Source: Hypanus sabinus (Eukaryota). From it: a stretch of 64,000 bases of DNA. The stretch spans positions 20,274,001 to 20,338,000 of the forward strand of contig NC_082722.1 in the NCBI RefSeq assembly GCF_030144855.1, in the 5' to 3' direction. Positions 4,924 to 61,049 of this stretch are shown here, piece after piece. Position 1 is the first letter of the stretch, and each line of letters starts with the position of its first letter. The position numbers and the translations under genes are program-made. The notes under the pieces were generated by a model. The model was not told the origin of the DNA. It was given only the letters and a program-made list of their open reading frames with translations, and searched no databases.

Positions 4924-4944
4924 GTTTGTTACCCAGTCAACCAT

Positions 4945-5352: not shown

Positions 5353-5747
5353 GTTGAAATATCTGTCAATATACTTCCAATATAATTTTAAGCCACTGTA
5401 AGGTCTGTTATTTCCTGATAACGATGACAGTGCATGAGGCAGTAATGATACAACATTCGCCGCATTTTTCGTCCCCTCAATGGAACAATCCATCTTTCCA
5501 TTTTAATTGAACTCAGATTATATCGACTCCAGACGTGTTTTGATTATTGAATGTGGCCTTCTGACTGTTACCCATGCAAAACTGTGTCACGTGGCTGTTA
5601 GCCAGGGGCAGCCAACCAGCCTAGGTTATTACGAGAAAATGTGTGAGCGTAACACCAGTAATGATATTTCACAAAATTTCCGCAATCGGGCGTTAGTCAA
5701 ATTGCAATTAAAGGAAAACATTGTACTTCCAGGAACAAAGAAACCAA

Positions 5748-6044
5748 GTAACAAAATAACTAAGAGCCAATTATATTTCTGAAAAATTGTTGCTGAATTT
5801 TCACTTGACGGCAAAACTCTCCACTGTCTGCGACACTAACATTCAGGAGGGTAAATGTGCCCTTCCTACTCTTAATACTGAACTACTGTTTTCTGCTGAC
5901 TGATTCTAAAAAATGTCCCCCGTCCAAACGAAACTTCAGCATATCCTGCAGAATTCGAAATTTGCAAAACATGGATTCAGTGCCACCGATTAAGAAGTTT
6001 AAAATCAGAGTATTGTTCCACTTTGGCTGAAATTGCTTTTACGG
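5748..6044 (-). pseudogene. Pseudo-VJ exon, paralogue A
   Basis: Aligns with exon 2 (AKVEQ, GGTESMFCKF, GTFTL.NV..AD.G). Acceptor AG>AA, 2-nt and 1-nt deletions, YYC>FCR, CAG>TAG stop, donor lost. Confidence 0.9.
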
Positions 6045-6079
6045 TTAACAATGCATAAATGAGAATGATGAAAACAGTT

Positions 6080-8900: not shown

Positions 8901-9229
8901 GAATTGACGCAAAGCAGCAGTGAGGCCACGGTCTTGTATTTCTTCATTCAGATCTTTGAAAATTGGTTCGAAGACCAAAGGGAACCCAGCATGATCTATG
9001 ACTGTATGCTCCTTCTTCCCTTCTCTTATCTCCAGCGATTTCAGCAATTCTCTGTCAGATACAATATGTTACATTAAGTGCCTAATATTCTAATTTCCGC
9101 ATGTGTCTAACATTTTGTACAAATGTTCTTAAGATACTAATCACATCAGTAACAGAAGTGATTTTGCTGAATTGCTTGTAATCCACAACAACACACATAA
9201 CATTGTAAAGGAGCTCAGCCGGGGAAGAA

Positions 9230-11420: not shown

Positions 11421-14400
11421 GCTAGGTAAATTATAAATACAGGAGTTTCTGAACATGCTGAAATCCAGACTAATAAACAAAAAATCCTGCAGGGACTTAG
11501 CAGGACTCACAGTATTAATGAAAAGGAATGAACTGTTGCCTTTTCGAGCCGAAAACCTTGATTAACGTGTTCCCTTTCTTCGAGATACGAAGCAATGTTC
11601 CCCTCTAATTTTGCAGCAGCGAGGACTGACCATCGCTCTGAGCAGGAAATGTTTACACGGCCTCTCAGAAGATTATGCACGAGCTGGTAGCTTATTAACA
11701 ACGAGCTATCGATTTCCAGTCTGAGCTTGTTGTGAAATTCGTAACAGTGTTGTAACTAGCAACACGGACATTGTAAGAACGTTGAAACTCTGAAGTGTTT
11801 TACATTAAAGTTGTCATGTATTCATTATGCAAAAACATCGTGGTTTATATTCATTAGCACACAATTATATGGTATTTCTCAAATGCATTAACAGAGATTT
11901 CATAATACTATTAGTATAATTTCAAAATTAGATTAACATTATCTAAAATGAACTTTGATCTGCGTGTCAGAAAGGCTATGAGAGCAGTAGCAGTTCCGCT
12001 ACTGCGCGGCTGGATACCCGCACAGTTTAATGGGAACAGTGGGGGAACGTGTATACAGACCATGTCCAGTGGAGGCTGGTTTACTAATGAACTGAACTAC
12101 GTCCTCAAACATCTGTAATTTTATTCTTTATGTCATGCCCCGTCTCCCGCTGTCAAATTTTTGAGTATTACCATTGACCTGAATCTTACAAGGAGATTTC
12201 AATCAAGGGTAAATATTGTTGCACAAACACTTCCCATTGTGATCATTACAGACGCGAATTCACCTTCTCCGAAAAAAAGCACCATTTTCATATCGACATG
12301 TAGATAACGTTTTCGTCCAGTGGAAGATGTAACATTTTCGGTTGATTAAAAAATGGGGTCATTCAGAAAAAAGTAGCCAATGAATGAACAAAGCAACCCT
12401 CTTTGAATTCCTGTCACAAAGTTTGGCGATGTCCATAAATCGTGAATTTTTTAACAACATTTCAACGAAGGCCATTAGGGACCAATTGCCCTACCTCCTA
12501 CATGATACTATACATTGATATTTGTAAATATATCACTGTTCCTGAGTTACCGGAAGTCTTAGCCAACAGGATAGGCAAATGCTTTCTTCTCAGCCAAGCG
12601 CGATGGAAGAATTAAATTTTGCCTCACGAGGTACTAACCTTACTTGCTGTTATTTTACATAAGTTACACATTGCAATACCTTGGAACCTTACCACTGAAT
12701 TCAATCCTGCCGTATATCGGTTTCCCTGTGTGTTGGAGCACAATTCAGTGAATGTTTACCAGATGCCAAAATCATTATTTGTTGTTTTATTTTATAGGTT
12801 ATTCCAGCCATCGAATTATTTGGTCTGAAATACAACGATGCTGCTGGACGAATTAATTGGGCTATACAATGCGGGTGAAGGCAAGAGAATGGTTAAAGTT
12901 TTGCGATCGAGACTCGGGGTAGAGTGTAGAGGGAAGATACTCAATAAATAAATTTGAGAAGGAATTGTGTGACCGAAACAGTCAGGTGATAGCTAGAACC
13001 AAACTGTGGGCTGGAGTGGCGGATTGGTTGCTGAGCTAAATTCGCTTCTTTATAACTGGCGGCTTCTACCCGCATAATAAAAAAAAAAAGATTGTCTCGT
13101 CAATGCCGGCGAATCTCTGGATTTTTTTACATGGTCTGATGAATATTGAGGTAAATCATTGGGGCATATTTAACGGAAACTAGTTTTTTTTTTACTTTAA
13201 ATCACTGAGAAATGTGCAATGGACCAGAAGAGCAGGTTATGACTTAGCAGATCAGACATTATCACGTTAAATGGCCTGGCAGTAGAGAGAGGCGGAATGG
13301 CGGATCCCGATTCATAAGTTTCTTACTTTTTCAATTACAATGAATGATTAGGAGAAATGTCGAAGACGAAAATGACCTCTTCTCTGCCCAACTCATATAT
13401 ATGATATCGATTCTCGTGTTTTTTGTCTGGATGTAGGGAATAAAACGAAGCAATGCCTCGGGTGGGTCTGCACTCATTGGTGGTCTACAGCTCGGAACTA
13501 CAACTGGATTCTCAGCTAGACTGCTTCCTGGGAGTGTTTACTATACATCTGCGCTCAATGTATGTTTGCGTTGCAATTTGGATGCTGATGTGTTCATGGA
13601 ATTTTAAGGTTGCAGAGCTGCACAAGTCAGTTTGTCAGCTCCATTTTTAGATTGTGGAAGTAGTATCAAACTCGAGCATCCAGTGACTAATTGAATCAAA
13701 CGATCGCAAAATGTATTAGTGATGTACTTATCAAATTGAACTTTAGATTTCTACCGCGTTACTCAAAGTTTATGTCAGCGTTCTTCAACATTTCCCTGTT
13801 TGAATCATATAGAGTTTGAAAGGGAAGAGCCTATCTTATCCCACAGAAGAATAACCGTTTCGTTCCTTATTTAAAATGAAGTCACTCAATATCTAATTAG
13901 GAGAGTAGAGAATTCATTGAAGTAATAGTCATATTACTAAATATTTGGCTAATACACAATACAAACACATTTTTCAGTTATTTCTACTGATTTTCGCAAC
14001 CTGATACAACTACTGAGCACACGAGAGGTTGTTTCACTGTAATTGAAGTTTAACTTGAACTTGAGCTTCCCGCGAGAGGACCTTAAGATATCGTGATGAT
14101 ATATCGTCGGCGATATTGTTGTTCTGCAAGCTGACGTATATGAACTAGAGCAGATTTTTGAATCCCTTTAAACTGATATCTCTGACGTACTTTTGAAATT
14201 GAAAAAGATGTCTATTGATTAGGGCAAAATGATATTTTGCTCGTCAGTCGCAATGTCCGCTATTCTTATTCTTAACTTTCAGTATTATTTCAGCCGTCGC
14301 TCTTTAGTTTCCCTGCAGTAGATAAGGAGAAAAAACCCGGGGAAAGTGCATTCGTTCACAGTACACAGAACCGAAGCCTTTTTAGGTTTTCAGCTTCTCG

Positions 14401-14759
14401 CTCCTTATAGACGCATCACATCTGCGTAAAATGAATCCTCGTTGCCGTCCTTAAATGCTGGTATTTTATTGTTTGGAAACTGTAGAGCGGCATATGTCAG
14501 CTTTTCATCTCCACCACGTCGAGTCTGTGGAAGTAATTCAATATCGAGTCTTTGTCAATTTTCCAGCAAAAAAAGCGAAGCGATAGATTTTAAGATACAA
14601 TTGCAATGTATGTAATAATTCTCATTTTCAGACAACAGCCATTTAAAACCGTTTGTACTGAAATAGGCAAAAGAGAAACCGCTGTTTCTTTTTTCCTCAC
14701 TGAAGTTTCGTTGCCACGTTTTACATTATTTTATAAGGTTTTATTTTACTCGGAAACTA

Positions 14760-15060
14760 AACTGCTTTCGGACTCGGGCTGCTTACGGAAGTCCGGGAGG
14801 TGGTCTGATCCCTGCACATGCAGCACCCAGGCCCACCGGTGTATGCAGAGGCCCTGGTGCTCATCAGCCAGATCTTCAGCTATGGGTAAATATCCCCATT
14901 GCCGTGGGGCAGCCTCGGGAGAGAAGAAAGCCATGGGTTTACTCCAGGCAGCAAATCCGGGGTCGAGCACCCAATGCGGCTGGAAGTTATTGAACATCAT
15001 TCCGGCAGCTCCTGCAGCCAAGCCGTTGACCAACGTATTGCTTTATCAGTTATCCTTTGG
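14760..15060 (+). mobile_element. GC-rich repeat fragment, possibly an RTE-type LINE 5' region (duplicate ~48315-48625, in the 3' UTR of copy C)
   Basis: gggcagcctcgggagag...aaatccgggg resembles recalled elasmobranch RTE 5' sequence; not verified. Confidence 0.3.
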
Positions 15061-15285
15061 AGTACACTGGTGAGGCCGAGAGGGGGATTTTCACAAATGG
15101 AAGTCTTAGGATTTCCATATCTTTCTCATTGGCTTGTGATAATGATGATCATCAGCGATTGTCTTTCGAGAGAGAAAAAACACCAGCAACCACCAAAATT
15201 TGACCCTTATGTTTTTTTATAGTTTAAGACATATATTGTAATTATTTCTTCCACACACAATGCAGATTATGCATCTCACCCGCGC

Positions 15286-15414
15286 CCAATCCCTTGATTT
15301 TACCTTTGCATAGACAACGTGTTCGTCCTGGTGTCTGACCTTGTGAATTATTTTGTTTTCTTTCACGTTTAGTGTAGCATAGGCAAGGGCATGTTCAACT
15401 GGCGCGAGTCCAGT
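15286..15414 (-). pseudogene. Orphan duplicate of the two-ITIM terminal exon
   Basis: Encodes TGLAPVEHALAYATLNVKENKIIHKVRHQDEHVVYAKVKSRD(W); acceptor AG>TG and stop TAG>TGG; no TM or exon-5 homologue seen between 15.4 and 31.8 kb. Confidence 0.88.
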
Positions 15415-19725: not shown

Positions 19726-19891
19726 NNNNNNNNNNNNNNNNNNNNNNNNNNNNNNNNNNNNNNNNNNNNNNNNNNNNNNNNNNNNNNNNNNNNNNNNNNN
19801 NNNNNNNNNNNNNNNNNNNNNNNNNNNNNNNNNNNNNNNNNNNNNNNNNNNNNNNNNNNNNNNNNNNNNNNNNNNNNNNNNNNNNNNNNNN
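19726..19891. other. Assembly gap (166 N)
   Basis: Run of N inside an LTR-like sequence. Confidence 1.
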
Positions 19892-36679: not shown

Positions 36680-37506
36680 GTTTGTTAACTCAGTCAACCT
36701 ATTCATTTTCTATACCATCACGGTATGGTCCAGGTCAATTTTGACCCGGACCAAGAATCCCCTCACAGGAAGTGTCTGTACCAAATTTTGAACAAAAGAT
36801 ATATCTAGAATGTATAAATCGCCTATCTGACATTAATAAATGGGTGATTAATCCTTATTTAATGTTTCGGAGATCTAAAATCTATTTCAATAGAAACTGG
36901 TCAACCTTCACCCGGAACAGCCTCAATAAGCAAAAATTTGCAGCACCTGTACAAAAATATAAATTTTTAACATATTTTCATTTTTTTTGCATTTTGGGCC
37001 ACTTTGGGAAAGTCATTGAGTTTAGGCCAAAAAAAGGCATTTAGGTTGTTTTCACTACTGTCAAATGTCATAACGGGTCACATTTGATCCCAACAGTATG
37101 TAAGGGTTAAAGTTGAAATATCTGTCAATATCCCTACTATATAATTTTAAGCCGCTGTAAGGTCTGTTTTGTCCTGATAACGATGACTGTGAATGAGGCA
37201 GTAATGATACAACATTCGCAGCATTTTTCTTCCCCTCAATGGAACAATCCAACTTTCCATTTTAGTTGAACTCAGATTATATCGACTCCAGACGTGTTTT
37301 AATTATTGAATGTGGTCTTCTCACTGTTACCCATGCAAAATTGTGTCACGTGGCTGTTAGCCAGGGGTAGCCAAACAGCCTAGGTTATTACGAGAAAATG
37401 TGAGAGGCTAACACCAGTAATAATATTTCACAAAATTTCCGCAATCGGGCGTTAGTCAAATTGCAATTAAAGGAAAACGTTGTACTTCCAGGAACAAAGA
37501 CACCAA

Positions 37507-37802
37507 GTAACACAATAACTAAGAGCCACTACTATTTCTGAAAAATTGTCGCTGAATTTTCACTTGACGGCAAAACACTCCACTGTCTGCGACACTAACA
37601 TTCAGGAGGGTAAATGTGCCCTTGTTACTCTTTACACTAAACTACTGTTTTCTGCTGACTGATTCTAAAAATGTCCCCCATTCGAACGAAACTTCAGCAT
37701 ATCCTGCAGAATTAGAAATTTGCAGAACATGGATTCAGTGCCACCGATTAAGAAGTTTAAGATCAGAGTATTGTTCCACTTTGGCTGAAATTGCTTTTAC
37801 GG
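37507..37802 (-). pseudogene. Pseudo-VJ exon, paralogue B
   Basis: Same lesions as copy A (AG>AA acceptor, two deletions, Cys>Arg, TAG, lost donor). Confidence 0.9.
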
Positions 37803-37899
37803 TTGACAAAGCATAAATGTGAATGATGAAAACAGTTGAATACACAGGACAAAAAAAATCGTCAGACTAAGTTGAAATTGCAGGGGCCCTGGCAGATAT

Positions 37900-39360: not shown

Positions 39361-39496
39361 TTTCCAAGTGGGAAGAAGAATGAAGAAATGACAATATGAG
39401 AATTGGATATGTGCTACGTCCAAAGTTGCACAGTGCAGCTAATGTGTAATATTATAACATCGGCTTAGCTCCAAAAACTTGGCACATTAATTCTGT

Positions 39497-39555
39497 GTAC
39501 ATGGTCAAATGATAGCGATAAATGTCACTCACCGAACTGTTGCATCTGTAAGTTT
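39497..39555 (-). pseudogene. Degenerate leader exon remnant, paralogue B
   Basis: Aligns with exon 1 and flanking intron (aatgtgtaatattataacat vs aattgtataatgttataacat); in-frame stops. Confidence 0.55.
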
Positions 39556-45500: not shown

Positions 45501-48298
45501 ACTTTGATCTGCGGGTCAGCAAAGGCTATGAACGCAGGAGCAGTTCAACTACTACGCGGCTGCATACCCGCACAGATTAATTGGAACAGTGGGGGCACGT
45601 TTATACAGACCATGTACAGAGGAGGCTGGTTTACTAATGAACTGAACTGCGTCTTCAAGCATCTGTAATTTTGTTCTTGATGCCATGCCCCGTCTCCCGC
45701 TGTCAAATTTTTGAGTACTACCATTGACTTCAATCTTACAAAGAGCTTTGATTCACGTCAAGGGTAAATATTGATGTACAAGCACTTCCCATTGTGATCA
45801 TTACAGACGCGAATTCAGCTCCTACGGAATAAAGCACCATTTTCATATCGACATGTAGATAAAGTACTCGTCCAGTGAAAGATGTAACATTTTCGGTGGA
45901 TTAAAAAAAGGTTCATTCTGAAAAAAGTAGCCAATGAATAAACAAAGCAACCCTCTTTGAATTCCGGTCAAAAAGTTTAACGATGTCCATAAAACCTGAA
46001 TTTTTTAACAACATTTCAATGAAGGCCAGTAGGGAACCATTGTCCGACCTCCTGCATGACACTATGCATTGATATTTGTAAATATATCACTGTTCCTGAG
46101 TTACCGGAAGTCTTAGCCAAAAGGATAGGCAAATGCTTTCTTCTCAGCCGAACGCGACGGAAGAATTAAATTTTGCCTCACGAGGGAGTAAACTTACTTG
46201 CTGTTATTTTACATAGTTTACACATTGCATTACCTCGAAACCTTACCACTGAATTCAATACTGCCATATATCGGTTTTCCTGTGGGTTGGAGCACAATTT
46301 AGTGGATGTTTACGAGATGCCAAAATCACTTTTTGTTGTTTACTTCTTATAAGGTATTCCAGCTACCGAAATATTTGGTCTGAAATACAACGAAGCTGCT
46401 CGACGAATTCATTGGGCTATACAATGTGGGTGAAGGCAAGAGAATGGTTAAAGTTTTGCGATCGAGACTCGGGAGCAGAGTGTGGAAGGAAGATACTCAA
46501 TAAATAAATATGAGAAGGAGGTGTGTGACGGAAGCTGTCAGGTGATAAGTGGAAGCAAACTGTGGGCTGGAGTGGCGGAGTGGTTGCAAGCTGAGCGAAT
46601 TTCGCTTCTTTCTAACTGACGGCTTCTTCAATTTGCATTAAAAAACAAAGTTTGTCTCGCCAATCGCGGCGAATCTCTCGATTTTCTTTTTTACATCGTC
46701 AGATGAATATCGAGTTAAATCATTGGGGCATATTTAATAGAAAGTAGTTTTTTTAACTTTAAATCATTGAGAATTGTGCAATGGACCAGTTGAGGAGGTT
46801 ATGACTGAGCATATCAGACATTATCACATTGAACGGCCTGGCAGTAGAGAGAGACGGAATGGCGGATCCCGATTCATAACTTTCTTACTTTTTTTTATGT
46901 TCAATGAATGAATCGGAGAAATGTCGAAGACGAAAATGACCTCTTCTCTTCCCAACTCATATGTATGATATCGATTGTCATTTTTTTGTCTGGATGTAGG
47001 GAATGAAACGAAGCAATGCCTCGGGTCTGTACTCATTGGTGGTCTACAGCTCGGAACTATAACTGGATTCTCAGCTACACAACTTCCTTGGTGTGTTTAC
47101 TATATATCTGCGCTCAATGTATGTTTGCGTTGAAATTTGGATGCTGATGTGTTCATGGAATTGTAAGGCTGCAGAGCTGCGCAAGTCAGTTTGTCAGCTC
47201 CATTTTTAGATTGTGGAAGTAATATCAAACTGGAGAATCCAGTGACTAATCGAATCAAACGATCGCAAAATATATTAGTGATGTACTTATCAAATTGAAC
47301 TTTAGATTTCTACCGGGTTAAAAGTTGATGTCAGCATTCTTCAAAATTTCCCTTTTTGAATCATATAGAGTTTGAACGGCAAGAGCCTATCTAATCCCAC
47401 AGAAGAATAACTGTTTCGTTCCTTATTTAAAATGAATGTACTCAAAATCTAATTAGGAGAGTAGAGAATTCATTGAAGTAAAAGTCATATTACTTATTAT
47501 TTGTCTAACTCACAATACCAGCACATTTTTCGTTATTTCTGCTGATTTTCGCAACCTGATACAACTACTAAGCACACAAGAGGTTGTTTCACTGCAATTG
47601 AAGTTTAACTTGAAATTGAGCTTCTCGCGAGAGGACCTGACGATATCGTGATGATACATCATCAGTGATATTGATGTTATGCAAGCTGACGTATATGAAC
47701 TAGAGCAGATTTTTGAATCCCTTTAAACTGATATCTCTGACGTTCTTTTGAAATTGAAAACAATGTGTATTGATAAGGGCAGAATGAAATTTCGCTCGTC
47801 TGTCGCAATGTCCGCTATGCTTATTCTTATCTTTCAGTATTATTTCAGCCTTCGCTCTTTAGTTTCCATGCACTAGATAAGGAAAACCAACCCGGGGGAC
47901 GCGCATTCGTTCACAGTCCACAGAACCGAAGCCTTTTTCGATTTTCAGCTTCTCGCTTCTTGCTGATGCTTCACATCAGCGTACACTGAATCCTTGTTGC
48001 CGTGCTTAAATACCGGTATTTTATTGTTTGGAAGCTGTAGAGCGGCATATGTCAGCTTTTCATCTCCAACACGTCGAGTCTGTGGAAATAATTCAATATC
48101 GAGTCTTTGTCAATTGTCCAGCAAAAAAGCGAAACGATAAATTTTAAGATACAGTTGTAAAGTATGTAATAATTTTCATTTTCAGATTACAGCCATTTAA
48201 AACCGTTTGTACTCAAAGAGGCAAAAGAGAAACCGCTGTTTCTTTTTGCCTCACTGAAGTTTCGTTGCCACGTTTGACATTATTTTATAATGTATTAT

Positions 48299-48304
48299 TT
48301 TATT
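48299..48304 (-). terminator. Candidate polyadenylation signal (AATAAA) for the receptor gene
   Basis: First clear minus-strand AATAAA seen, ~555 nt past the stop codon; another at 48020-48025. Confidence 0.3.
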
Positions 48305-48857
48305 CGGAAACTAATCTGCTCCCGGACTCGGGCTTCTTACGAAGTTCCGGGAAGTGGTCTGACCACTGCACATGTAGCACCCAGGCCTTTCGGTGTATGC
48401 AGAGGCGCTGGTGCTCATCAGCCAGATCCCCAGCTATGGTAAATATCCCCATTTCCGTGGGGCAGCCTCGGGAGAGATAAAACCCACGGGTTCACTCCAG
48501 GCAGCAAATCCGGGGTGGAGCAACCAATGCGGCTGGAAGTTATTGAACATCATTCCGGCAGCTCCTGCAGCCAAGCCGGAGACACACGCATTGCTTTATC
48601 ACGTGTCCTTTGGAGTACGCTGCTGAGGCCGTGGGGGGGGGGGGGGAATTTCACGAATGGACGTCTTAGGATTTCCATATCCTCCGCATTGGCTTGTGAT
48701 ACTTGTGATAATGATGATCATCAGCGACTGCCCTTGGAGAGAGAAAAAACAGGGCCAACCACAAAAATTGGACCCATACTTTTTTTTTTCATAGTTGAAG
48801 ACATAAATGGTAATTAATTCTTCGACACACCATGCAGATTATGCATCTCCCTCGCCC

Positions 48858-48986
48858 CTAATCTCTTGACTTTACCTTTGCATAGACAACATTTTCGTCC
48901 TGGTGTCTGACCTTGTGAATTATTTTGTTTTCTTTCACGTTTAGTGTAGCGTAGGGAAGCGCATTCTCAACTGGCGCGAGTCCAGC
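48858..48986 (-). CDS. Exon 6, terminal cytoplasmic exon with two ITIMs (LPYATL, VVYAKV)
   Basis: Acceptor ctacctgtttgtaacag|, phase 0, 42 codons plus TAG; both motifs fit (I/V/L/S)xYxx(L/V). Confidence 0.88.
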   Translation of the reverse strand, partial: AGLAPVENALPYATLNVKENKIIHKVRHQDENVVYAKVKSRD

Positions 48987-51900
48987 CTGTTACAAACAGG
49001 TAGTTAACATTATAAACAAGTCTAATGAAATTCCAATTCCATAAAGAGAAAATAATTATGAAAACGTATCCGTAAATGAGTAAACATGCGGCATAATAAC
49101 ATTCTAATACCAGTGAATGATATTGCAATGTATATTATTTCAGAAACGGTGCGAAATGTGTTTTCCCCAGTGCTGAAAGTCCCTTTGTTCTTTTAAGATT
49201 GAAATTGATCTTCAAGAAATACTTAAAAGCTATTCTACGAGAAGGATGAGTTTCTCATCTCCCGTCATATTTTTCCTTCCGCGGTCATTTCCGTTTTTCC
49301 TCCTTTCTCCAACAGTTTACGAAGGGACAACTGTCTCCTTTGTAGTCCTCCGACCCCACAGACTATTGAAGGAACGTTTTACCGACCAGTTTGTCACCGG
49401 CTTTCATGCACAAGCAGACATATCCATACTTAGGTCGTAATTCATAATAATATTCCTCTACCAATAAGTTTGTGCAGAGCAAGAGGATAAGATATTAGGG
49501 AAAAGGACCAAACAAGTGTGACAAGGGGAAGGATGTATGGAACCGCAAGAGTTCGCAGAGGCACTTCATGAGCACTTTTCTTCAGTATTCACTACGGAAA
49601 AGGATCTTGGAGATTGTCGGACTGACTTATAGGGGACTAAAAAGCTTGAACATGTAGATATTAATAAACAGGATGTGCTGGAGCTTTGAGAAAGCATCAA
49701 GTTGGATAAGTCACCGAGGGCGGACGAGATGCTTCTTAGGGTACAGTGGGAGGCAAGAGGATATTGCTAAGCCTCTGGCGATAATCTTTGCATCAGCAAT
49801 GGGGGTGGAATAGGTTCTGTAGGTTTGCAGGGTTGCGGATCTTGTTCCCTTATACAAGAAAGGCAGTAGAGATAGCCCAGGAAACTATAGCCCAGTGAGT
49901 CTTACGTCAGTGGTTGTTACTGTGATGGAGAAGTTCCTGGGAGGCAGAATTTATGAACATTTGGAGAGGCATAATATGATTAGGAATAGTCAGCATGGCT
50001 TTGTCAAAGACAGGTGATGCCTTACGAGCCTGATAGAATTCTTTTGAGGATGCGATTAAACACATTGATGAAGGTAGAGCAGTAGAGGTAATGAATATGG
50101 ATACCAGGAAAGCATTTGTCAACCTACCCCATGCAAAGCTTATAGAGCAATTAAGGGTGCATGGGATCCAAGCAGATACTGCTTTGTGGATCCTAAACTG
50201 GCTAGCCCACAGAAGACAAACAGTAGTTGAGGACGGGTCATATTGTGCATAGACGTCGGTGACCAGTGGTTTGCCTCAGGGATCTGTTCTGGGACCCGTA
50301 CTCTTCCTGATTTTTATAAATGACCTGGATGAAGATGTGGAGGCATGGGTTAGTAAATTTGCTGATGACACAAACGTTGGAGGTGTTGTGGATAGTGTGG
50401 ACGGCTGTCACATGTTATTGCGGGATAATGATAGGATGCAGCACTGTGCATATTTGCAACAAGTGGCAATAAGTGAGACGCAACAAGTGGCAGATGGAGT
50501 TCCACTCAGATAAGTGTAAGGTGCATCATTTTAGTTGGTCAAATGTGAGGACAGAATAGAATATTAAAAGTAAGACTCTTGCCAGTATGGAGAATCACAG
50601 AGATTCATGTCCATAGGATACTCAAAGCTGCTGCGAATGCTGACGCTGTGCTTAAGAAAGCATACGAGGCTTTGGCCTTCATCAATCGTATGATGGCGTT
50701 TAGCAGCCAGGGGGTAATGTTGCAGCTCTATAGGACCTTTGATAGTCCCCACTTGGAGTACTCTGCTCAGTTCTCGTCACCTCAGTATGGGAAAGATGTG
50801 GAAAACACAGAAAGGGTGCAGTGCAGATTTACAAGTATTTTGTTTGGATGGCAGAGCATACCTTATGAGAATAGGCTGAGTGAGCACGGCCTTTTTTCTT
50901 TGGAGGATCGGGGGATGAGAGGTGACCTGATAGAGGTGTATAAGATGAAGAGAGGCATTGATCATGTGGATAGTCAGAGGATTTTTCCCAGGGCTGAAAT
51001 GGCTAGCACGAGAAGTCACAGTTTTATTCTGCTTGGAAGTAGTTACGGGGAGATGTCGTGCGTTGTTTTTTTTATGTAGAGTGTTGAGTGCGTGGAATGG
51101 GCTTCCAGCGACGGTGGTGGAGGCGGATACTAATGGGTGTTTTAAGAGACTCCTGGATATATACATGGATCTCAGAAAAGTAGAGTGTTGTGGATAAACA
51201 TAGGTAATTTCTAAGGTAAGAATATGTTCGGCACAGCTGTGTGGGCCAAAGGACCTGTATTGTGCTATAGTTTTTCTACATTTATAATATACCCCTCTCA
51301 GAAGCAAAAAAGAAGTTGATTCACTCACCGGTTCTCCACTCTGACATGCTTCCTCAGCGTTTGTTTTATTACCTAAGGGAATTAAAATATACGACACCTT
51401 AAATAATAGTGCTAATGTTAGAAAATGTGAAGTTGCGCATTGGATTGTAATCAAATTTGTTGCCGAAAGTTGAAACTAATATTCAAAGCAGTAGTGGTGT
51501 ACATTGTGGCCATGAAATGTGTTGTGCATGACATTTCATGAATGTGATGGATCTAGATTTTGATTGAAAGAGCAGAGTGGCGGTAGCATAACATCAGTCA
51601 TTTTATATCTCAAAGGAACTAAACTCTAACAGTAAGATCATCATTACTTGTGTAAATTCGCCGCAGGAAGTCACAGTCTGAAAACCCTTGGTGACTGAAA
51701 ATCGTTGGTACAAGGGATGATTGTATAAATTGAACGGGAATGTAAAATTATCGTGTTATTTATAATATGTATTTTGGAATGTGAATTGGATAATGCATTG
51801 GAAATCTTGATTCTCTCATTATCATTTCTGTTTTCAATCTGCAGAGGTAATAAATCTAAATTCTTGTCAAATAATTTATGTTCTTACCACGTTTTGGCTT

Positions 51901-54900
51901 AACTCCGATTCTTATCAATATTATAATTAGAATTGCAATTGCCAGTCCGCCCAAAGCACATCCAAGAATCAGGGATTTATTGCTGACTTCTAGATCATGT
52001 AAAAAAAAAGAAACATATATACATATATAGAGACCATGAGAAAAAGTAGTACATTTTAATACCAGAGGAAATCATCAGGGCAGGCAGCATCTGTGGGGAA
52101 AAGCAGTTGACGTTTCAGGTGAGACTCTTGGCAGGACTGGTGTTGCCTGGCCTGCTGAGATCGTCCAGCATGTTGTATCTGCTGCTCGGAGTTCCAGCAT
52201 CTACAGATAATCTCTTGCTTGTGATTTGGTACTTTACAGTGAGTATTTCTTTTTTCATTTGGATTATAGGCATTTTTCTTTTTTTGATGCCTTTCCTGAT
52301 AGTTGGATCGCAATTGCGAAAGGACATCGTTTGTTTCTGAAATGTCACTGGAAAACTTTCTCAGTAGATCCCATTGGCAATAAACAGAAACTGACTTTTT
52401 TACTTTCTCAAGACATCACAAGATGCATTGGTAGATATTAAAAAGCGTAGTCCGAACCATATATGAGAAGTGACAAGATATTTGGTGAAAACCGGGGAAA
52501 CGAATGAACAGGTTTAGATGAAGTAATGGCAAAAAGGCAGTTGCAGCCAAAATTCCAGCTTTAAGTGCAGAGGCAGCCAAAGGCATAGAATTGCGCAAAA
52601 AGTTAAAAAAAAAAGATCAGTATATGGAACGATGGATGTACTGAAATACTATATATGAACATTTGTAACATTAAGATGATTTCACTCCTTCTGAACGTGA
52701 CTAACTTCCAAAATACACAATTTTGGAATTTGATCTTCTCCTGAATGTTTCGGATGTTTTGATTCTCAACTGGGATGAAGTATAACGATTGCATTCTCGG
52801 GCATTTCCAAATAATACACGTGCACAATATTAGGAGGCAGAAATTACAATGATTGATCAACTTATCAGTGAAGAAACCTTTTAGTACCGATTCTTATCAC
52901 TACAAGGAATCTATCTCTGGCTGAAGGAAACTGCCACTTGATATTCTCAGCCAGAATCCTATCTACGCATTGTAGTTAGATTGTACTCTCAACTGAGCGA
53001 GCTTTTTGAACAAATTTATATAAAATTATCTTTTCGTCACGCTGATATAAACATGCAAAAGGTAATATTCACATCATTACTGATCTTCTAAATACATAAT
53101 CTATTTCTTGCTTGAGAGTTCGGTTGGTGCAAATATACTATATGTCCTTTATACTGAATTTACCAAAGTAAAATATGTCTTAAAATTACTTTTACCCACA
53201 GTTATTAAATACGCATTCCTTCACGTTCTTCCGTTTGTAAATCTTGTTATTTCTTCTTTTTAACGAATGGCTAAAGATTAATGGCAAAGTGCACAAAGGA
53301 TAATGATTGACTTTCCACAAACGATTGTCGTGCTCAACTGGATAGAGAAAGTCATGGAACAGAATTGCATTTAATATCATATCACATCCATGTCATGTGC
53401 ATTCTTTAGTACTAATATAAAGTAAAATTAAAACTGATGGCCATAATAAAGAGACATTCTGGTCACACCATTTATTGGTGAAATTCCCGGCATTATCAAA
53501 AACAAATTTTCAATATGCAGGACAATAGAGCTGCGTTGGACTAATAGGGAAAGAAATAGGATTGCATTGTACTCCAGAATACGTATCCATGCCATTACCA
53601 AAGGTCATATTTCATAATGCTGCTGGAGTATATATTTTATATTACCCGGACTTCGTTTGAAACCATTACTACAAAGCGATGAATTCCGTCATCAAAATCC
53701 TTGATATATAAAGGGAAAAGAAGTAGTTCCAATCCCAACTCCTGTGGAACACCACTGTACCACCAGAAAATCATATTCCCGGTGATAAGTAGAACACGCA
53801 AGACCCAAACATTCTTCACATTTCCTCCTAGAAAATAAGTAAAGATACACGCTACTTCATCGACCATGTACCTGACAGCTGTCGAAATACCTCTTCTGGC
53901 ATCTCAGTTTTTTTTTAATATATCGGAATGTTTGCTATGTAATAGGCTATGCATAAATTTAAGAACTTCGTAAGAACATAAGAAATAGGAACAGCAGTAA
54001 GCCATCTGGCCCATCGAGCCTATAAGATCATGACTGATCTGATGAGGGACACATCTCCATCTACCTTCCTTTCCCCATACTGCTGAATTCCTCAGCTATG
54101 CAAACAACATATCCAACTTTGTTTTAAGTATTTTTACAGAGGTAGACTCTACTGCTTCATTGGACAGAGATTTTACTACTCTTTGCGAAAAGCAGTTCCT
54201 CTTTATATCCATCGTAAGGTTACCCCTCCGAATCTTGAGGCAATTTCCCTACTACAAGTCTCACCTATCAGTGGAAACAACTTTCCTGACTCTTTCTTAT
54301 CTAATCCTTTTGTAATTTTATATGTTTCTATAAGGTTTCCGCTCATCTTTCTGAATTCCAGCGAGTACAGTCACGAGCGACCGAATCTCTCCTCATACTT
54401 TAACCCTCTCATCTCTGGAATCAACCTGTTGAACGTCGTCTGTACTGTGACCAGTATATCCTTCCTCAAGTAAGAACACCAGAACTGCACGCAGTACTTT
54501 AGATTCGGCCTCACTACTACCCTATACTTCTGTAGCGTAAGTTCCTTGCTCTTAAGTTCAATCCCTCTAGCAATGAAGACCAACAATCCTCCTGCCTTCT
54601 TGATAGCCTGCTGCAACACCGAACCAACATTTTACGATTCATGCACAAGTATTCCCAGAACAGAAGTCTGCTGCAACCATATAAATAATGGTCTGATTTT
54701 GATTTTCCCTTCCAAAACAGATGACCTCGCATTTACCAACATTGTACTCTATCTGTCAGACTCTTACCCATTCACTAAACATATCATTTCTCGCTGCTGT
54801 CTATCTATATCCTCTGCATAATTTGTTTGTCCGCTCAGTTTAGTGTCGTCAGCAAACGTAGATAAACTACTGATTGCCAAACAGAGGAAGACTGATGTAT

Positions 54901-57900
54901 CCCAACTCTCAGCTTTTTATTTGCTAGCCATTTATCTATTCATGCTAATACATCACCCCCAACTCTATGCATTCATATCTTATGGACAGGTCTTTTATGT
55001 GGCGCCTTATTGAACGAATTCTGTAAATCCAATTATATAACGTCCATCTGACGCCGTCTATACACTGCTCTTGTTATATTATCAAAGTAATTTGTCAGAC
55101 AGGACCGGCGTTTGCTTCACACTTGTCTGTGCGGCTGACGGATCAATTTCTTTTCAGCAGTAATTCGTTACTTGTTGCTTAATGATAACTTCAAGTATTT
55201 TCCCAACTACAGGAGTTAACTAACTGGCATTTTACTTGCCTTTTGTCTACCTCTTTTATTGAACAGTGGCGAATGGCATTATCCCTCTTCCAATCCGCCG
55301 GGACCTGCCGTGAGTCCGGAGAATTTTGGCAAGTTATCACCAAAGCCCAACTATAACCTCTGCCAATTCTTTCAGTTCCCTGAGATCTGTCTTTCTTTTG
55401 ACCAGCAAGATTACTCAGCACTACCTGTTAAATTATAGCTATTGTATCGAGGTTCTCACCTCCAATTGCATTCATGTTATCTTAATTCGCCACGTTAGAC
55501 GTGCCCTCCACCGTGAAACTCGACACAAAATAGCTATTCAAAGCCTATTCAAAGCTCATTATCCAATACCAATTCCCTTTCTCGTCGCCCAAGGCACATA
55601 CGTTCACCTTGGCCACCGCTTTATATAATTATAAAAACTTTTACTATACGTTTCAATATGTTATAATGGTTTATTTTCATAATCCATCTTCCCATTCTTT
55701 ATTGTTTGGTTAGTGGTTTTTCGTTGCTTTTTAACGTTTTCCCAGTCTTCCAGTTTCCTGCTTCTCGGGGTGACTTGATACGCACGAGCTTTGAGCTTGT
55801 TTTCTTCTTTTATATCCTTAGTTATCCAAGGCTGGCGCACCCCGCCCTTACTATCCTTGCTTTCAACTGGAATATACCGTTATTGAACATCGTGAAAACA
55901 TAACCATATAACAATCACAGCACGGAAACAGGCCATCTCGGCCCTCCTAGTCCTTGCCGAACTCTGAGTCTCACCTAGTCCCACCTACCCGCACTCAGCC
56001 CATAACCCTCCACTCCTTTCCTGTCCATATACCTATCCAATTTTACCTTAAATGACACAACTGAACTGGCCTCTACTACTTCTACAGGAAGCTCATTCCA
56101 CACAGCTATCACTCTCTGAGTAAAGAAATACCCCCTCGTGTTTCCCTTAAACTTCTGCCCGCTAACTCTCAAATCATGTCCTCTCGTTTGAATCTCCCCT
56201 ACTCTCAATGGAAACAGCCTATTCACGTCAACTCTATCTATCCCTCTCAAAATTTTAAATACCTCGATCAAATCCGCCCTCAACCTTCTACGCTCCAATG
56301 AATAGAGACCTAACTTGTTCAACCTTTCTCTGTAACTTAAGTGCTGAAACCCAGGTAACATCCTAGTAAATCGTCTCTGCACTCTCTCTAAATTATTGAT
56401 ATCTTTCCTATAATTCGGTGACCAGAACTGCACACAATATTCTAAATTTGGCCTTACCAATGCCTCGTACAATTTTAACATTACATCCCAACTTCTGTAC
56501 TCAATGCTTTGATTTATAAAGGCCAGCATTCCAAAAGCCTTCTTCACCACCCCATCTACATGAGACGCTACCTTCAGGGAACTATGCACTGTTATTCCTA
56601 GATCTCTCTGTTCCTCTGCATTCCTTGAAAGTATCTTTGAAAGTATTCCAGTATTATAGCCTCAACGTCCCACGATGTAGCCTATGTTCCCAGTCTACCC
56701 TACTGAGCTCTTCCCTCATCATTTTGAACTCTCCCTTGATTAGTTATAATATACTGGTTTTAGATTTTAAAAAAAGCCCCTCCATTTATATAAGAAAGTC
56801 GGTCATGCTGCGATCACTCTTTCCAAGAGGATCCTTAACAACATCATTGGTAATTTTATTTGTCTCATTGCGCAGCGCTAGATCCAAGATAACGTGTTCC
56901 CTTATAGGTTCATCAACATGCTGTTGAAGAAAGCCAGCATGTATGGATTCTAGGAAGCCCTCTTTAATACTGCCTCGACCAACTTGACTCAAATAATCCA
57001 TGTGTATGTTAAAGTCCACTATACCTGCTGTTCCATTCTTACATGACTCAGATATTTCTCGGTTTATAGCCTCTGTCACTGTACTGTTATTATTCGGTAG
57101 CCTACAGAAAATTTCCACCAATGATTTTTCCCTTTACTATTCCTAATCCGATGGATTCAACATTCTGCTCCTGAGATCTTATATCGTCTCTCACTATGCA
57201 CTGATTGCATCTTTAATTTAGATCGCTTTCCCACCTGCCTTATCTTCCTGCCTATTCTCCCGTATCACCTGATATCCTTGTTAATTTAATTCTTTATTCT
57301 CTTCATTCTGCAAACACGTTTTTGTATAGGCCACTAAATCATAGGCCCTTATACTGATTTGTGCAACAACTTCATTGACCTTGATACGGACACTACAGAC
57401 ATTTAGATAAAGTGCCCTTACAACGCATTGTGCCTTTAAAATCTAGTGATCTTTGTCTCGTAGGTGGTGGACTCTATGGATTCCACCCTTACCTTTCTCT
57501 TTTTCTAATTTTTGCTTTTAATTTATCTTTATCCACACACTTTACTCTTTTCCTTTATTAATACTTCTCCAATCTACTGAACCAAGCTCCATGCTACTTG
57601 TTTGAAATAACCAACCCATTCCACAACCCAAGTTAAGCGATTCGTCAGGATCCAGATCCCATCACGTTTCAGGTGGAGCGCGTCCGAATGGAACAGCCCC
57701 CTCCTAAATCCTGGTGCCAGTTTCCCATGAATTCACCCCCACTTCTCCCACACCAATTCTTCAGCTACGTGTTTAACTGTCTAATATTTTGCACGTGGTT
57801 CAAGTTGTAATACAAAGTTAACTACTTTTGTTTTTGGTTCTGCTTCTAAGTTAGTCCCTTGCTGCTCAAAATCCCTCAGCAGGATCACTTTCCTCGGTCT

Positions 57901-60036
57901 ACTTTTGTCGTTGATCCCTACATTTCCTTGCAGGCAGGAAATAAAGTAAAATAAAAAGTACACACGTTATTTTTTCCTCGTTGGATAAAGAAATGAGATT
58001 TCATAGTACAGCTCTCCAGGCATTTTTGTTTCATTCATCTGAGCTTGCTTTAAATGCTTCTGTTCTTACCTTGTTCAATAATATAGCTGAAACTGGCAGG
58101 AATTTTTAGCGTTTCGTGAGATACCAGGCAGGTGTAAACCACTTTTCCCTGAGTTGGCTGTGCATCTTCCAAAGTACTCGAAGCCTCATAAAATCCTACT
58201 GACGTCTCTTTTATTGATATTTCTGGTTTGTTTAGAATTTCCATATTATTTCTTCGCCAAAAGATGTCTAATTTCTTAGGATAAAATGCTGCAGTTTTAC
58301 ACATCAGTTTCCGGGATTTAGATGTTGTTTCTTCAACACGAATGATTTTCAGCGGAGTTGGCGGAGCTACAAAAGAATAAAACGGACGTAGAATATTTAG
58401 CTATTATTTGTTTGCACGTACTCTCCGCCGCACGCTACCACTCTCAATTGTTATCAATACGGCCGTTTAAATTCGCCAGAGTTTCTCAATTTTTTGATCG
58501 TTTCAGGGGGCCTGTAAACATGAGAAAACAGATGTGCTGGTGACAGCTGGAGAACGCATGCCTGTATGGAATAAACGCAGCAGACTTAGAGCTTTCTAGG
58601 ATTGACTAGGATTCCTCAAACTGGCCATTTTGTCCCTAACTCTGCCGTTGTAGGTAAATTTTGTATGTGTGCAAAATGTGAGGTTTTAATGGGATCGGCA
58701 TTGTGAAGGTGCACACGTAACAAGTTGTGTTTCTCACTGTATAGGTATTAATCCTACGTCCCGTAATTGACATTAATGAAGTGGGTTTGTTTGCCTTTGG
58801 GATTTAGATTGAAGGTGAATATATTCCTCTGTGAATTTACTGAATTGTTGATTACGGTATTTCGATGTTCCCCGTCTCCCAAAACTTCATCGTCAGTTTG
58901 GCAGAGTGAAAGATGTTTCTTAATTACTTACAAATATTTGTAGCTATGCGTTTAACAACTGCAGAATAGAAATCAATGAAATACGTCGTGATGTGGTAGT
59001 ATAAAAAACCGGCTGAAGAACGGGCGGATGTAGTTTAAACTCGGCAAATCCTCGCTTTGAATTAGATTGCTTGTGATTTGCCCTTCAACAGAATTTGTCT
59101 ACAGCTCCCTAGTTCAGCCGAATCAAAATCGTCGTCCAAAAATTAGGTGGTTCAGTTCATCCGCAATTTAAATCATTAGATTGATACATTTTTGGGGCTG
59201 TTGGTGGACTAGGTCATGGCGGGGACAGGGTGGGACGTTGTGCAGGAATATAGGAATATTGTTGGAAATATCAATGGTCCAAAAATTAATTGGACCAAAA
59301 CCTAATCTCCAGAATCACATCGAAATAATAAACAGAAAAATCCGAAAAGTTCTAAAATGATATTTTCATTTCTTTTAAAGATTTAAAGCAAATTAGTGGC
59401 ACAAATTCTAAACCAGCTATACTATTTCACAACCACAGTTCCGCAATCGCGGATTTTCCTAAAATGCAAAGGGATTCGAATTCTCCATTTCCAGGAATAA
59501 AGACACTTACTTAACACAATAAGCTGAGAGCCACTACCATTTCCCAATATTTGTTGTTGACTTTTCACTTGACAGTAGTACACGCCGTTGTCTGTGTATC
59601 TCACATTCCGGAGGGTAAATGTGCCACGACCTTTCTTTACATTGAACTGATATCTGCTGTCTGGTTCGATAAATGTATTCTGACCATCCTTCCACCACGA
59701 AACTTCAGCAGTATCTTGTAATATTGGAAATTTGCAAAACATGGATTCAGTTCCGCCGATTGAGACTTTTATTGTTGGAGGGAATTGTTCCACTTTGGCC
59801 GAAGTTCCTTTTGAGGCTGACAAAGCATAAGTCAGAATGATGCATTCACTGTACAGAGAATCAACAGACAAAATAGGCAGAACAGTGGACATTTGCAATA
59901 GGAAAATTTGCTGCCGGTTACAATTGTATAATGTTATAACATACTTCTTTCGTAGATACGGCACAAAAAAATTAAGCGTACCTGGCCAAAATGCGGCGAG
60001 AAGAGCCAAGAACCAAACTTTTGCATCCACCGACAT
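48858..60036 (-). CDS. Spliced gene (copy C): leader-VJ-C1-TM-2xITIM immunoglobulin-superfamily inhibitory receptor, 310 aa; join complement(59982-60036,59511-59816,58070-58366,51888-51989,51329-51372,48858-48986)
   Basis: Six exons with GT-AG boundaries and compatible phases (1,1,1,1,0); 55+306+297+102+44+129=933 nt with no internal stop. Protein: MSVDAKVWFLALLAAFWPA SKGTSAKVEQFPPTIKVSIGGTESMFCKFPILQDTAEVSWWKDGQNTFIEPDSRYQFNVKKGRGTFTLRNVRYTDNGVYYCQVKSQQQILGNGSGSQLIVLT PPTPLKIIRVEETTSKSRKLMCKTAAFYPKKLDIFWRRNNMEILNKPEISIKETSVGFYEASSTLEDAQPTQGKVVYTCLVSHETLKIPASFSYIIEQE VSNKSLILGCALGGLAIAILIIILIRIGVKPKRG NKTNAEEACQSGEP AGLAPVENALPYATLNVKENKIIHKVRHQDENVVYAKVKSRD*. Confidence 0.88.
49470..51270 (+). 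mobile_element. CR1 LINE RT and 3' end in intron 5 of the receptor gene (antisense)
   Basis: LPQGSVLGPVLFLIFINDLD...KFADDT, PHLEY, RGDLIEVYK; frameshifted. Confidence 0.92.
51329..51372 (-). CDS. Exon 5, short cytoplasmic exon (GNKTNAEEACQSGEP)
   Basis: Acceptor ttttaattcccttag|, consensus donor CCG|gtgagt; 44 nt, phase 1-0. Confidence 0.82.
51888..51989 (-). CDS. Exon 4, transmembrane segment
   Basis: Acceptor ttttttttacatgatctag|, donor CGTG|gtaaga; encodes EVSNKS-LILGCALGGLAIAILIIILI-RIGVKPKR (20 uncharged residues then basic stop-transfer); 102 nt, phase 1-1. Confidence 0.9.
52035..52225. repeat. Short SINE/MITE-like repeat with complementary ends in intron 3
   Basis: gcaggcagcatctgtgg...gacgtttcagg...tgcctggcctgctgag...ccagcatctacag; same family as the Penelope-like tails. 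Confidence 0.6.
53640..57920 (-). mobile_element. Old CR1 remnants (ORF1/endonuclease/RT/3' end) filling intron 3, same orientation as the gene
   Basis: VVRPNLKYCVQFW (54371-54619), endonuclease-like ORF 56786-57121, (taagaaca)n-type tail at ~53970. Confidence 0.85.
55900..56625 (-). mobile_element. Younger 5'-truncated CR1 nested in the older CR1
   Basis: Uninterrupted 204-aa RT C-terminus (VRPNLEYCVQFWSP...RRRLRADLIEVFKI) plus intact 3' UTR and short tandem tail. Confidence 0.9.
58070..58366 (-). CDS. Exon 3, Ig C1-set domain
   Basis: Acceptor ttattcttttgtag|, donor CAAG|gtaaga; motifs LMCKTAAFYP, IFW, YTCLVSH; 297 nt, phase 1-1. Confidence 0.93.
59511..59816 (-). CDS. Exon 2, germline-joined VJ-type Ig V domain
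   Basis: Acceptor ctgacttatgctttgtcag|, donor TTAA|gtaagt; canonical C (FCKF), W (VSWW), DNGVYYC and J-like GNGSGSQLIV in one 306-nt exon; lies inside ORF 59422-60099. Confidence 0.93.
59982..60036 (-). CDS. Exon 1, signal peptide (MSVDAKVWFLALLAAFWP)
   Basis: ATG at 60036, hydrophobic core, phase-1 donor CCAG|gtacgc; 165-nt intron to the V exon. Confidence 0.85.
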
Positions 60037-60093
60037 TGCCAATGAAAGTGGTCTTTCTGAAAGATAGAAATTCATTCGATGCAATAATGAAGA

Positions 60094-60172
60094 CCTCATT
60101 ATTTATGAAGTCACATGGTCAAGGCTACGTCGATGCCTTGAGTACAGGAAATGCTGCAGATACAGGAAATCC
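60094..60172 (-). promoter_or_regulatory. Candidate proximal promoter: TATA-like CATAAAT, E-box CATGTG, two ETS-type sites
   Basis: Forward atttatg at 60101-60107, cacatg at 60112-60117, and tacaggaaat twice (60143-60152, 60161-60170), 65-135 nt upstream of the ATG. Confidence 0.4.
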
Positions 60173-61049
60173 CGAATAATACAGAGAAATGCTAGCAGAG
60201 CTCACCATCAATGATGAAAAACAAAAAGTTGATGACTCGGGGTAAGATCCTTCTTCAGTACTGCAAACCAATTGGGAGAAGCCACAATAAGGAGATAAGG
60301 GAGAGAAACGCGTATATCCAAGCAGCTGATATGTGGCTGGAGGCGGACATAAGGAGATGACACTTGATAGATGGATTTATATCGGTAGCCTCCAATCTGC
60401 TGATATGAACACTGATTTCTCTAACTTTCATTAAATTCGCTCATACATTTCCCATTCTGGGTCTCTTTTTATCCTTTCTCTTCTTCTCAGCTCGCTTTGC
60501 AGCTCTTCCTCCTTCGCTTTCTCTAATCGTCCAATCTCCTCTCCTATCACATTGCGTCGCATTTGGCAAGACCAACAGGACTAGTAAATCCCGGTTCAGG
60601 AGGATAATGAGATATTGTTTCGGAGAAAGGAGACCTGCGTCATTTGTAGGAAACGGGTTCAAGCAATTTCCGACAGAAATATGAGCTGTATTATAATACA
60701 CCTGCCGGAAATCATGAGAGTAGAAAGATAGCACTGTACAACTACTGAATATAAAGTAAGAAGAAATGAGGAAATAGCGACTGAGAAATCGCGATGACCA
60801 AGCTGTAAATTATTATTTCACTGTGGTTAAAATCCTGGGAGCTAAGGGATTTAGGGGAAAAACACATTATTCTTTCAACAGATGCACATGAGAAAAATTG
60901 AGGCGTGGGGTTAACGGGGTGCTCACGGTGTAAGTACACAGTCCGCTTGATGAACAGACGGCACCTAACCAAGTGTATCATTTGACATTGTGAGAAGCTA
61001 GAGGAGAAATTGTAAGGCCTGTTGCAAAAATATCGGCATCGGCTTTAAT

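Follow-up and report, generated by a model that had tools for sequence, protein, structure and literature searches.

An intact gene joining one V-type and one C1 domain to a probable SIRP-like inhibitory tail in a 64-kb stretch of Hypanus sabinus

The concept of a non-rearranging receptor in which a VJ-type domain and a C1-set domain are coupled to ITIMs, the tyrosine-based inhibitory motifs of immunoreceptors, already exists, in SIRP-alpha and in PRARP. PRARP genes, reported from fish, amphibians and reptiles, have a non-rearranging VJ exon and a V-C1 layout, and their membrane-bound product contains a possible ITIM. PMC10751288 cites PRARP (Fu et al. 2019, J Immunol 202:1992) as a family of VJ genes that do not rearrange, and SIRP-alpha signals through SHP-1/SHP-2 (PMC12975943). 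Two elasmobranch genes have also been described: UrIg, a secreted protein of VJ and three C1 domains, and UrIg2, in which VJ is followed by nine to eleven C domains and a transmembrane segment (PMC12227049). Here we analyzed a 64,000-nucleotide stretch of Hypanus sabinus (assembly GCF_030144855.1, contig NC_082722.1, positions 20,274,001 to 20,338,000; "the window", in whose coordinates all positions are given), where an earlier sequence-only reading had recognized a gene for a germline-joined, antigen-receptor-like inhibitory receptor.

We consider it likely that the window contains an intact minus-strand gene of seven coding exons, that the product is a 349-aa type I membrane protein with a SIRP-like four-tyrosine tail, and that the gene belongs to a multigene family confined to cartilaginous fish. 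With this gene and its relatives, rays carry intact genes that join the minimal layout of one V and one C1 domain to an inhibitory tail of the SIRP-alpha type.

Gene structure and the 3' end of the coding sequence

Assembled by script, all seven coding exons are open and extend from 60036 to 47945 on the minus strand. They encode, in order, the leader, the V domain, the C1 domain, the transmembrane segment, a 14-aa stretch and two tyrosine-motif segments:

59982..60036, minus strand: exon 1, holding the start codon and the greater part of the signal peptide, MSVDAKVWFLALLAAFWP; donor GTACGC in phase 1
59511..59816, minus strand: exon 2, Ig domain of V(J)-like/I-set-like type in a single exon; its J-like G strand, NGSGSQLIV, lies at 59543-59517
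58070..58366, minus strand: exon 3, C1-set Ig domain (FYP...IFW...YTCLVSH)
51888..51989, minus strand: exon 4, NKS sequon in a short stalk, then an uncharged transmembrane helix and stop-transfer KPKR
51329..51372, minus strand: exon 5, 44-nt cytoplasmic exon, GNKTNAEEACQSGEP
48876..48986, minus strand: exon 6, LPYATL (Y280) and VVYAK (Y303), ending at the conserved donor AAG/GTAAAG
47945..48079, minus strand: exon 7, added here; in-frame terminal exon with LTYAAL (Y316), SVYADV (Y338) and stop TGA

The earlier reading had spliced six exons in frame to a 310-aa protein. Direct reading and script assembly reproduced its exons, splice sites and product exactly (933 nt, stop TAG at 48860-48858, AG at every acceptor and GT at the five internal donors), and the leader, the single C1 domain and the uncharged transmembrane segment were all borne out; only the 3' end is probably wrong, as a seventh exon follows. 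Exons 1 to 4 each end in phase 1, as is typical of Ig-superfamily genes, and exon 5 ends in phase 0. The leader exon is 87-93% identical in nucleotides to its counterparts at three loci from Mobula and Hypanus (L001-L003), which carry orthologous or near-orthologous genes and serve for comparison below. The transmembrane sequence, LILGCALGGLAIAILIIILI, contains no charged residues, and the stalk of 6-7 residues between the C1 domain and the membrane contains no cysteine. As a separate matter, the transmembrane cysteine C230 was considered as a dimerisation site and rejected because the M. hypostoma and Hypanus orthologues have glycine at this position. The least certain exon of the six-exon model is exon 5, the sole splice-flanked open candidate within a block conserved with Mobula and Hypanus; its product resembles the homologous 14-aa exon of paralogues, including the RefSeq model P0006.

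Searching the window with family proteins (tblastn), we found tail-like coding sequence downstream of the six-exon TAG. A good donor, AAG/GTAAAG, lies directly after VVYAK, so that exon 6 would end at 48876, and the acceptor of exon 7, ttccacag, lies 0.8 kb downstream and opens an exon encoding 44 residues. The donor, as GTAAA(G/A), is conserved in four sequences: this gene, the compared Hypanus sabinus and Mobula hypostoma sequences and a paralogous copy in the window. In the last three the position of the TAG is TGG, and the TAG is therefore not a conserved stop. The RefSeq Mobula paralogue P0006, mapped on its locus (L004), consists of the same seven coding exons, exon for exon; its exon 6 ends at the homologous ..IIYSQ/gtagag and its exon 7 starts with TKRNGADKLTY. 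The C-terminus encoded by exon 7 also aligns with that of P0005, a family member from Narcine. Because the donor is conserved, exon 7 is open and conserved, and P0006 has the same layout, the most likely product is probably the 349-aa seven-exon form, the six-exon model being cut short; the 310-aa form may be a read-through isoform. The seven-exon product would have a 107-aa tail with tyrosines 280, 303, 316 and 338 (spacing 23/13/22) in the motifs LPYATL, VVYAKT, LTYAAL and SVYADV.

Conservation, surroundings and expression

All seven exons are present in the compared Hypanus and M. hypostoma sequences, with nucleotide identities of 76-93%, and the introns are 80-83% identical to those of Mobula. 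The lowest exon identity (76%) is that of the gapped exon 7 of Hypanus. M. hypostoma has an open exon 7 without gaps, in which both tyrosine motifs are kept, while in Hypanus this exon has a 15-nt (5-codon) gap and the second motif reads SVYAYG, with the +3 residue changed. Exon 6 is open in Hypanus and contains both ITIMs. Against the Hypanus and Mobula orthologues, the ratio of nonsynonymous to synonymous substitution rates (dN/dS) was 0.33-0.45 for the V and C1 ectodomain and 0.48-0.58 for the transmembrane segment and tail; by exon, it was 0.24-0.43 for exon 3 and 0.21-0.37 for exon 7. The pattern is one of purifying selection at moderate strength, as is typical of immune receptors that evolve fast.

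The gene lies next to duplicated material. A tandem segmental duplication of ~32-33.5 kb matches window positions 41-16875 to 31781-50449 at 89-91% identity, and its right-hand boundary falls inside intron 5, in a fragment of a long interspersed nuclear element (LINE); the last two exons were therefore duplicated without the ectodomain exons. We searched the window for further family exons and found only pseudo-V exons and orphan tail copies; no other conserved genes were found in the 64 kb. The remaining features are:

13544..15405, minus strand: decayed, orphaned copies of exon 6, exon 7 and the pseudo-exon, from the tandem duplication; exon 6 acceptor lost, premature stop in the exon 7 copy
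47103..47225, minus strand: decayed exon 7 duplicate downstream of the stop; acceptor AG lost, LTCAAL and TLSADI in place of the tyrosine motifs
37477..37806, minus strand: a paralogue's pseudo-V exon; CAA in place of the acceptor CAG, a frameshift, a stop codon in frame within the J-like motif, and no donor left
5724..6038, minus strand: a further pseudo-V exon that nearly duplicates the one at 37.8 kb
49500-51250, plus strand: LINE reverse-transcriptase fragment in intron 5
55975-57121, minus strand: LINE reverse-transcriptase fragment in intron 3
19726-19891: assembly gap (166 N) within the 15-kb unique stretch that separates the duplication units

The decayed exon 7 duplicate at 47103-47225 resembles most closely the final exon of P0006, the Mobula paralogue. 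The LINE fragment of intron 5 is very abundant in RNA-labelled contig sets, with a word depth of up to ~40,000. Taken together, the duplicates suggest a receptor cluster under birth-and-death evolution.

Several observations weigh against an intact, active seven-exon gene. The tail appears weakly constrained, with a dN/dS of 0.6-1.0 for exon 6 and, for the tiny exon 5, above 1 in some comparisons. An A-run in exon 6 of M. hypostoma (L001, ~21730-21745) carries a 1-nt indel, by which the tail would end after its first ITIM, and for the M. birostris copy (L003) no exon 6 or 7 was found within 16 kb downstream; these defects could be assembly errors, or the tail could be decaying in some copies. 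The NCBI models of the Mobula and Hypanus orthologues (P0003, P0004) stop after the transmembrane exon. These models also have spurious N-terminal extensions and read through introns, and they lack the conserved tyrosine-motif exons, although the genomes concerned contain them; automatic annotation that ends after the transmembrane exon thus misses the inhibitory tail. The gene itself sits among decayed duplicates. The RNA data consisted of four small runs bearing the same species label (22-99 million letters, tissue not stated), compared with window positions 47800-52100. Exons 6 and 7 had zero depth in them, which says nothing about expression, and the same applies to the V-C1 stretch, found in no listed RNA run. 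No coverage in these runs was attributable to exons 4 and 5, where the bin signal lay beside the LINE boundary or a T-run; coverage of the region was heavy over the intronic LINE fragments only.

Two alternatives build on these points. The six-exon product could be the main form, with the donor after VVYAK unused, translation ending at the TAG at 48858, and two ITIMs, LPYATL and VVYAKV, in the tail. Its frame is open, with the stop five codons past the donor, and the earlier reading was right that the two tyrosines are 23 aa apart in that frame; VVYAKV is moreover a canonical ITIM, whereas the spliced Y303 motif, VVYAKT, is not, which counts against the seven-exon form. A minor isoform of this kind could also occur. 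As the main form, however, it is at odds with the TGG found at the TAG position in three sequences, with the donor shared by all four, with an exon 7 that is open, keeps both tyrosine motifs and evolves at a dN/dS well below 1, and with the splicing of P0006 at the homologous position, and we regard it as unlikely. Alternatively, the gene could belong to a birth-and-death family as a member that is silent or died recently, with a frame that is still open but not expressed. The runs compared gave no RNA support, pseudo-V exons and orphan decayed tail exons lie nearby, the tail shows decay in Mobula copies, and the gene was not found among the annotated proteins of the protein collection searched. 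Nevertheless, none of the seven exons is interrupted and their splice sites are canonical, dN/dS stays well under 1 in V, C1 and exon 7, and the RNA data are tiny; silence therefore seems to us a little less probable even than the six-exon main form, and we retain the intact seven-exon gene as the preferred reading.

The ectodomain and its cartilaginous-fish family

Pfam assigned exon 3 to C1-set, with a score of 34.7 bits against a cutoff of 21. A second C1 domain was not found between 58070 and 51989 using tblastn with 13 family proteins. For exon 2, the I-set model scored higher than the V-set model (41.7 and 36.2 bits), and the V-set match covered the C-terminal half only. The two cysteines of this domain are 53 residues apart. 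We built an AlphaFold (AF2) model of the ectodomain of the Mobula orthologue on a 47-sequence family alignment (mean pLDDT 94); it predicted no strand between C and D, and hence no C'' strand, and a G strand interrupted by a bulge at the GxG position. Given the higher I-set score, the cysteine spacing and the lack of a strand between C and D in the model, the N-terminal domain is best described as a short one of V/I type whose G strand is J-like, rather than as a canonical V-set domain. The V exon alone gave its best PDB sequence matches to I-set domains (MyBP-C, Robo, titin), followed among single domains by amphioxus IgVJ-C2, CD79b (E=5e-5) and light-chain V; NKp30 was absent from the top 60 matches.

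The J-like motif reads N-G-S-G-S-Q-L-I-V, with asparagine where the J motif of Ig and T-cell receptor (TCR) chains has phenylalanine or tryptophan. Across the 47 aligned members the motif is N-G-T/S-G-S/T-x-L-x-V, and in most of them the asparagine forms an N-glycosylation sequon (N-G-T/S). If glycosylated, it would occupy the site where antigen-receptor V domains pair. The motif lies in the same exon as V, with a GTAAGT donor directly after it, and a heptamer-spacer-nonamer scan for recombination signal sequences (RSS) in 57900-60300 gave no RSS-like site. These results support a germline-joined, non-rearranging gene and agree with the earlier claim that no RSS or split J surrounds the V exon. 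The description of the exon as a single-exon VJ domain also holds as to the single exon and the J-like strand, but the I-set-like character means that the label VJ needs qualifying.

A word-indexed search with the V region matched Mobula proteins only, at 78-84% aa identity and with the automatic name "NCR3LG1-like"; the C1 identity to Mobula proteins was 81-86%. An exhaustive HMMER search with the Mobula orthologue returned 871 proteins at E<=0.001, among them 51 cluster representatives at E<1e-30. The names that were looked up, all assigned automatically by NCBI, are mostly [quoted passage not shown] (SIRP-alpha-like) and come from Callorhinchus, Heptranchias, Heterodontus, Scyliorhinus, Amblyraja, Narcine, Hypanus, Hemitrygon and Mobula. 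Scored with a hidden Markov model (HMM) of the family, this gene obtained 113 bits for V and 120 bits for C1. In a tree of V and C1 the family was monophyletic with support of 82/86, and this gene fell in a batoid subclade supported at 100/98. The sequences thus support membership in a multigene family of cartilaginous fish, from chimaeras to rays, as the earlier reading had proposed. RefSeq already lists predicted orthologues with automatically assigned names, the gene itself being an uncharacterised member, and literature searches for SIRP-like ITIM receptors of sharks or chimaeras gave no description of the family.

Among the 64 sequences with V, C1 and transmembrane segments that we examined, 31 have at least one canonical ITIM and 12 have short tails. 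In four members from other species (P0008, P0020, P0031 and P0032) the tail is short and lacks ITIMs, and the transmembrane segment has an acidic residue plus His (DH or EH) at its cytoplasmic end. By analogy with SIRP-alpha and SIRP-beta, such members may be paired non-inhibitory or activating counterparts. One member, P0010, has two C1 domains, which are a recent internal duplicate, and no clearly separate V-C1-C1 SIRP was found among the chondrichthyan matches. Weaker matches were a coelacanth V-C1-TM (transmembrane) protein with two ITIMs, LLYTTI and TVYAEI (P0166), and V-C1-TM proteins of reptiles (P0112, P0121, P0183 and P0188, from turtles, Rhineura and Anolis), of which the models P0112 and P0121 lack ITIMs. 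The coelacanth and reptile proteins carry misleading automatic names (tapasin-related-like, NCR3-like, SIRP-beta-1-like).

Comparison with known receptor systems

Like SIRP-alpha, the gene has an N-terminal Ig domain that does not rearrange and whose G strand is J-like, then a C1-set domain, an uncharged transmembrane segment and a four-tyrosine tail in which xxYAxL(N/D) and xxYAxxQ/K motifs alternate. The tails of P0027, a family member, and of a bird SIRP-alpha align colinearly across all four tyrosine motifs (30% identity, E=4e-7). In two-domain superpositions, the AF2 model was best matched by domains 1 and 2 of SIRP-alpha/beta, with template modelling scores (TM-scores) of 0.76-0.79 and a root-mean-square deviation of 3.6-3.9 Å over ~217 residues. 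It differs from SIRP-alpha in having one C1 domain, where SIRPs are defined by a V-C1-C1 layout (PMC12975943), in its short, I-set-like V domain without C'', and in the tyrosine spacing of 23/13/22 against 24/17/26 in bird SIRP-alpha (P0177). It also lies on a branch separate from the SIRPs: the V+C1 tree gave a polytomy of four lineages, the chondrichthyan family, the SIRPs (98/96), the reptile V-C1-TM proteins (100/100) and the coelacanth protein, and a tree of C1 alone, with SIRP domain 2, SIRP domain 3 and Ig lambda, left the deep nodes without resolution. The family thus appears as a clade of its own that has the architecture and the four-tyrosine tail in common with SIRP-alpha. As the gene lacks the V-C1-C1 layout and phylogeny does not join the two groups, we describe it as SIRP-like in architecture and probable signalling and do not file it as a SIRP.

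By this likeness, the receptor would bind a ligand with its N-terminal domain, and its tail tyrosines would be phosphorylated by Src-family kinases. Pairs of phosphotyrosines could then recruit the tandem-SH2 phosphatases SHP-1/SHP-2, which would dampen activating signals in the leukocytes bearing the receptor. While the gene structure, domains, motifs, conservation and family membership are observed, the expression, phosphorylation, phosphatase recruitment, cell type and ligand belong to what we infer.

Compared with Ig lambda and TCR chains, the leader-V(J)-C1 order is the same, and Ig lambda chains gave the best E-values in both the PDB sequence search and Foldseek. In the sequence search with the Mobula orthologue, the best light chain reached 5e-13 and human SIRP-alpha (2wng) 1.8e-10, both matches spanning J plus C1. 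In structure, however, the light chains had TM-scores of 0.42-0.46, the two-domain arrangement being extended in the model and not elbow-bent. The gene further differs from Ig and TCR in the fusion of V and J in the germline with no RSS, in the asparagine that replaces the J-motif phenylalanine or tryptophan, and in its ITIM tail and uncharged transmembrane segment. The earlier claim that the layout matches a single rearranged TCR or Ig light chain stands for the domain order. The antigen-receptor-like reading was right about a germline-joined V(J)-C1-TM protein with ITIMs, while a special closeness to Ig or TCR was not demonstrable.

Two accounts that would draw the gene nearer to one of these systems were weighed against the SIRP-like reading. 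It could be a true SIRP-alpha co-orthologue that lost or never gained the third domain and binds a CD47 orthologue. The colinear four-tyrosine tail, the superposition on SIRP domains 1 and 2 and the automatic NCBI names all favour this, as does the lack of a clearly separate V-C1-C1 SIRP among the chondrichthyan matches, the C1 pair of P0010 being a recent duplicate. Set against them are the single C1 domain, the V domain without C'', the clade apart from the SIRPs, if only within a polytomy, and the family HMM, which scored SIRP domains (V 16-39 bits, C1 40-54 bits) no better than the Ig lambda C domain (45 bits); we find this account improbable, to about the same degree as a silent gene. Less probable still is a reading of the gene as a privileged relic of the antigen-receptor ancestor that preceded RAG, with a closer tie to Ig and TCR chains than SIRP, PRARP or UrIg have. 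The layout of a single light or TCR chain, the best E-values and the J-like G strand speak for it; yet SIRP-alpha scores in the same range as Ig lambda, the TM-scores to light chains are well below those to SIRP, the V exon alone matches I-set domains and CD79b best, the asparagine of the J-like motif forms a sequon in most members, and the membrane segment is uncharged, with no cysteine in the stalk. Because the ectodomain is matched by SIRP, the V domain is I-set-like, the tail is SIRP-alpha-like and the concept was already known, the bearing on the pre-RAG ancestor proposed earlier is no greater than that of SIRPs, with Ig lambda and SIRP-alpha about equally distant by sequence; on the RAG invasion event, too, the gene by itself informs no more than they do.

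As a large chondrichthyan gene set, the family can be used for dating the SIRP-type inhibitory module, and it bears on whether the third SIRP domain is a later addition and on the relation to PRARP and UrIg. The family as a whole deserves description; the single gene is not a major surprise. We think it unlikely, on a par with the six-exon main form, that the chondrichthyan family, the coelacanth protein P0166 and the reptile V-C1-TM proteins are remnants of one ancient inhibitory V(J)-C1 lineage, sister or ancestral to the SIRPs. If they were, the four-tyrosine tail of SIRP-alpha and the VJ-C1 core would predate the split of cartilaginous and bony fish, and the antigen-receptor precursor would have no nearer signalling relative alive today than this lineage.

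Other known receptors resemble the gene in parts. B7-H6 (NCR3LG1), from which the nearest Mobula proteins take their automatic name, also has an ectodomain of V-type and C1-like domains and gave the top Foldseek E-value among Swiss-Prot models, but its TM-score was 0.66 against 0.77 for SIRP, the Polypterus NR3L1-like protein fell outside the group at 97/96, and the gene has no B7-type tail. CD79b and NKp30 similarly have a short I-type N-terminal domain with a J-like G strand; they differ in being single Ig domains without C1, CD79b with a tyrosine-based activation motif of immunoreceptors (ITAM) and NKp30 with a charged transmembrane segment.

By description, the closest published layout is that reported for PRARP, with one V and one C1 domain and a potential inhibitory motif; PRARP is reported for bony vertebrates, whereas the family described here is chondrichthyan. 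The coelacanth and reptile V-C1-TM proteins may correspond to PRARP, and a search from a turtle V-C1-TM protein gave no PRARP-named protein among its matches. UrIg and UrIg2, the published elasmobranch genes of the non-rearranging VJ-C1 kind, share with the gene a split leader and a single-exon VJ followed by C1-type domains. The text of the paper describing them (PMC12227049) contains no occurrence of "ITIM" or "SIRP", and the gene described here is set apart from both by its layout, a single C1 domain and a four-tyrosine tail.

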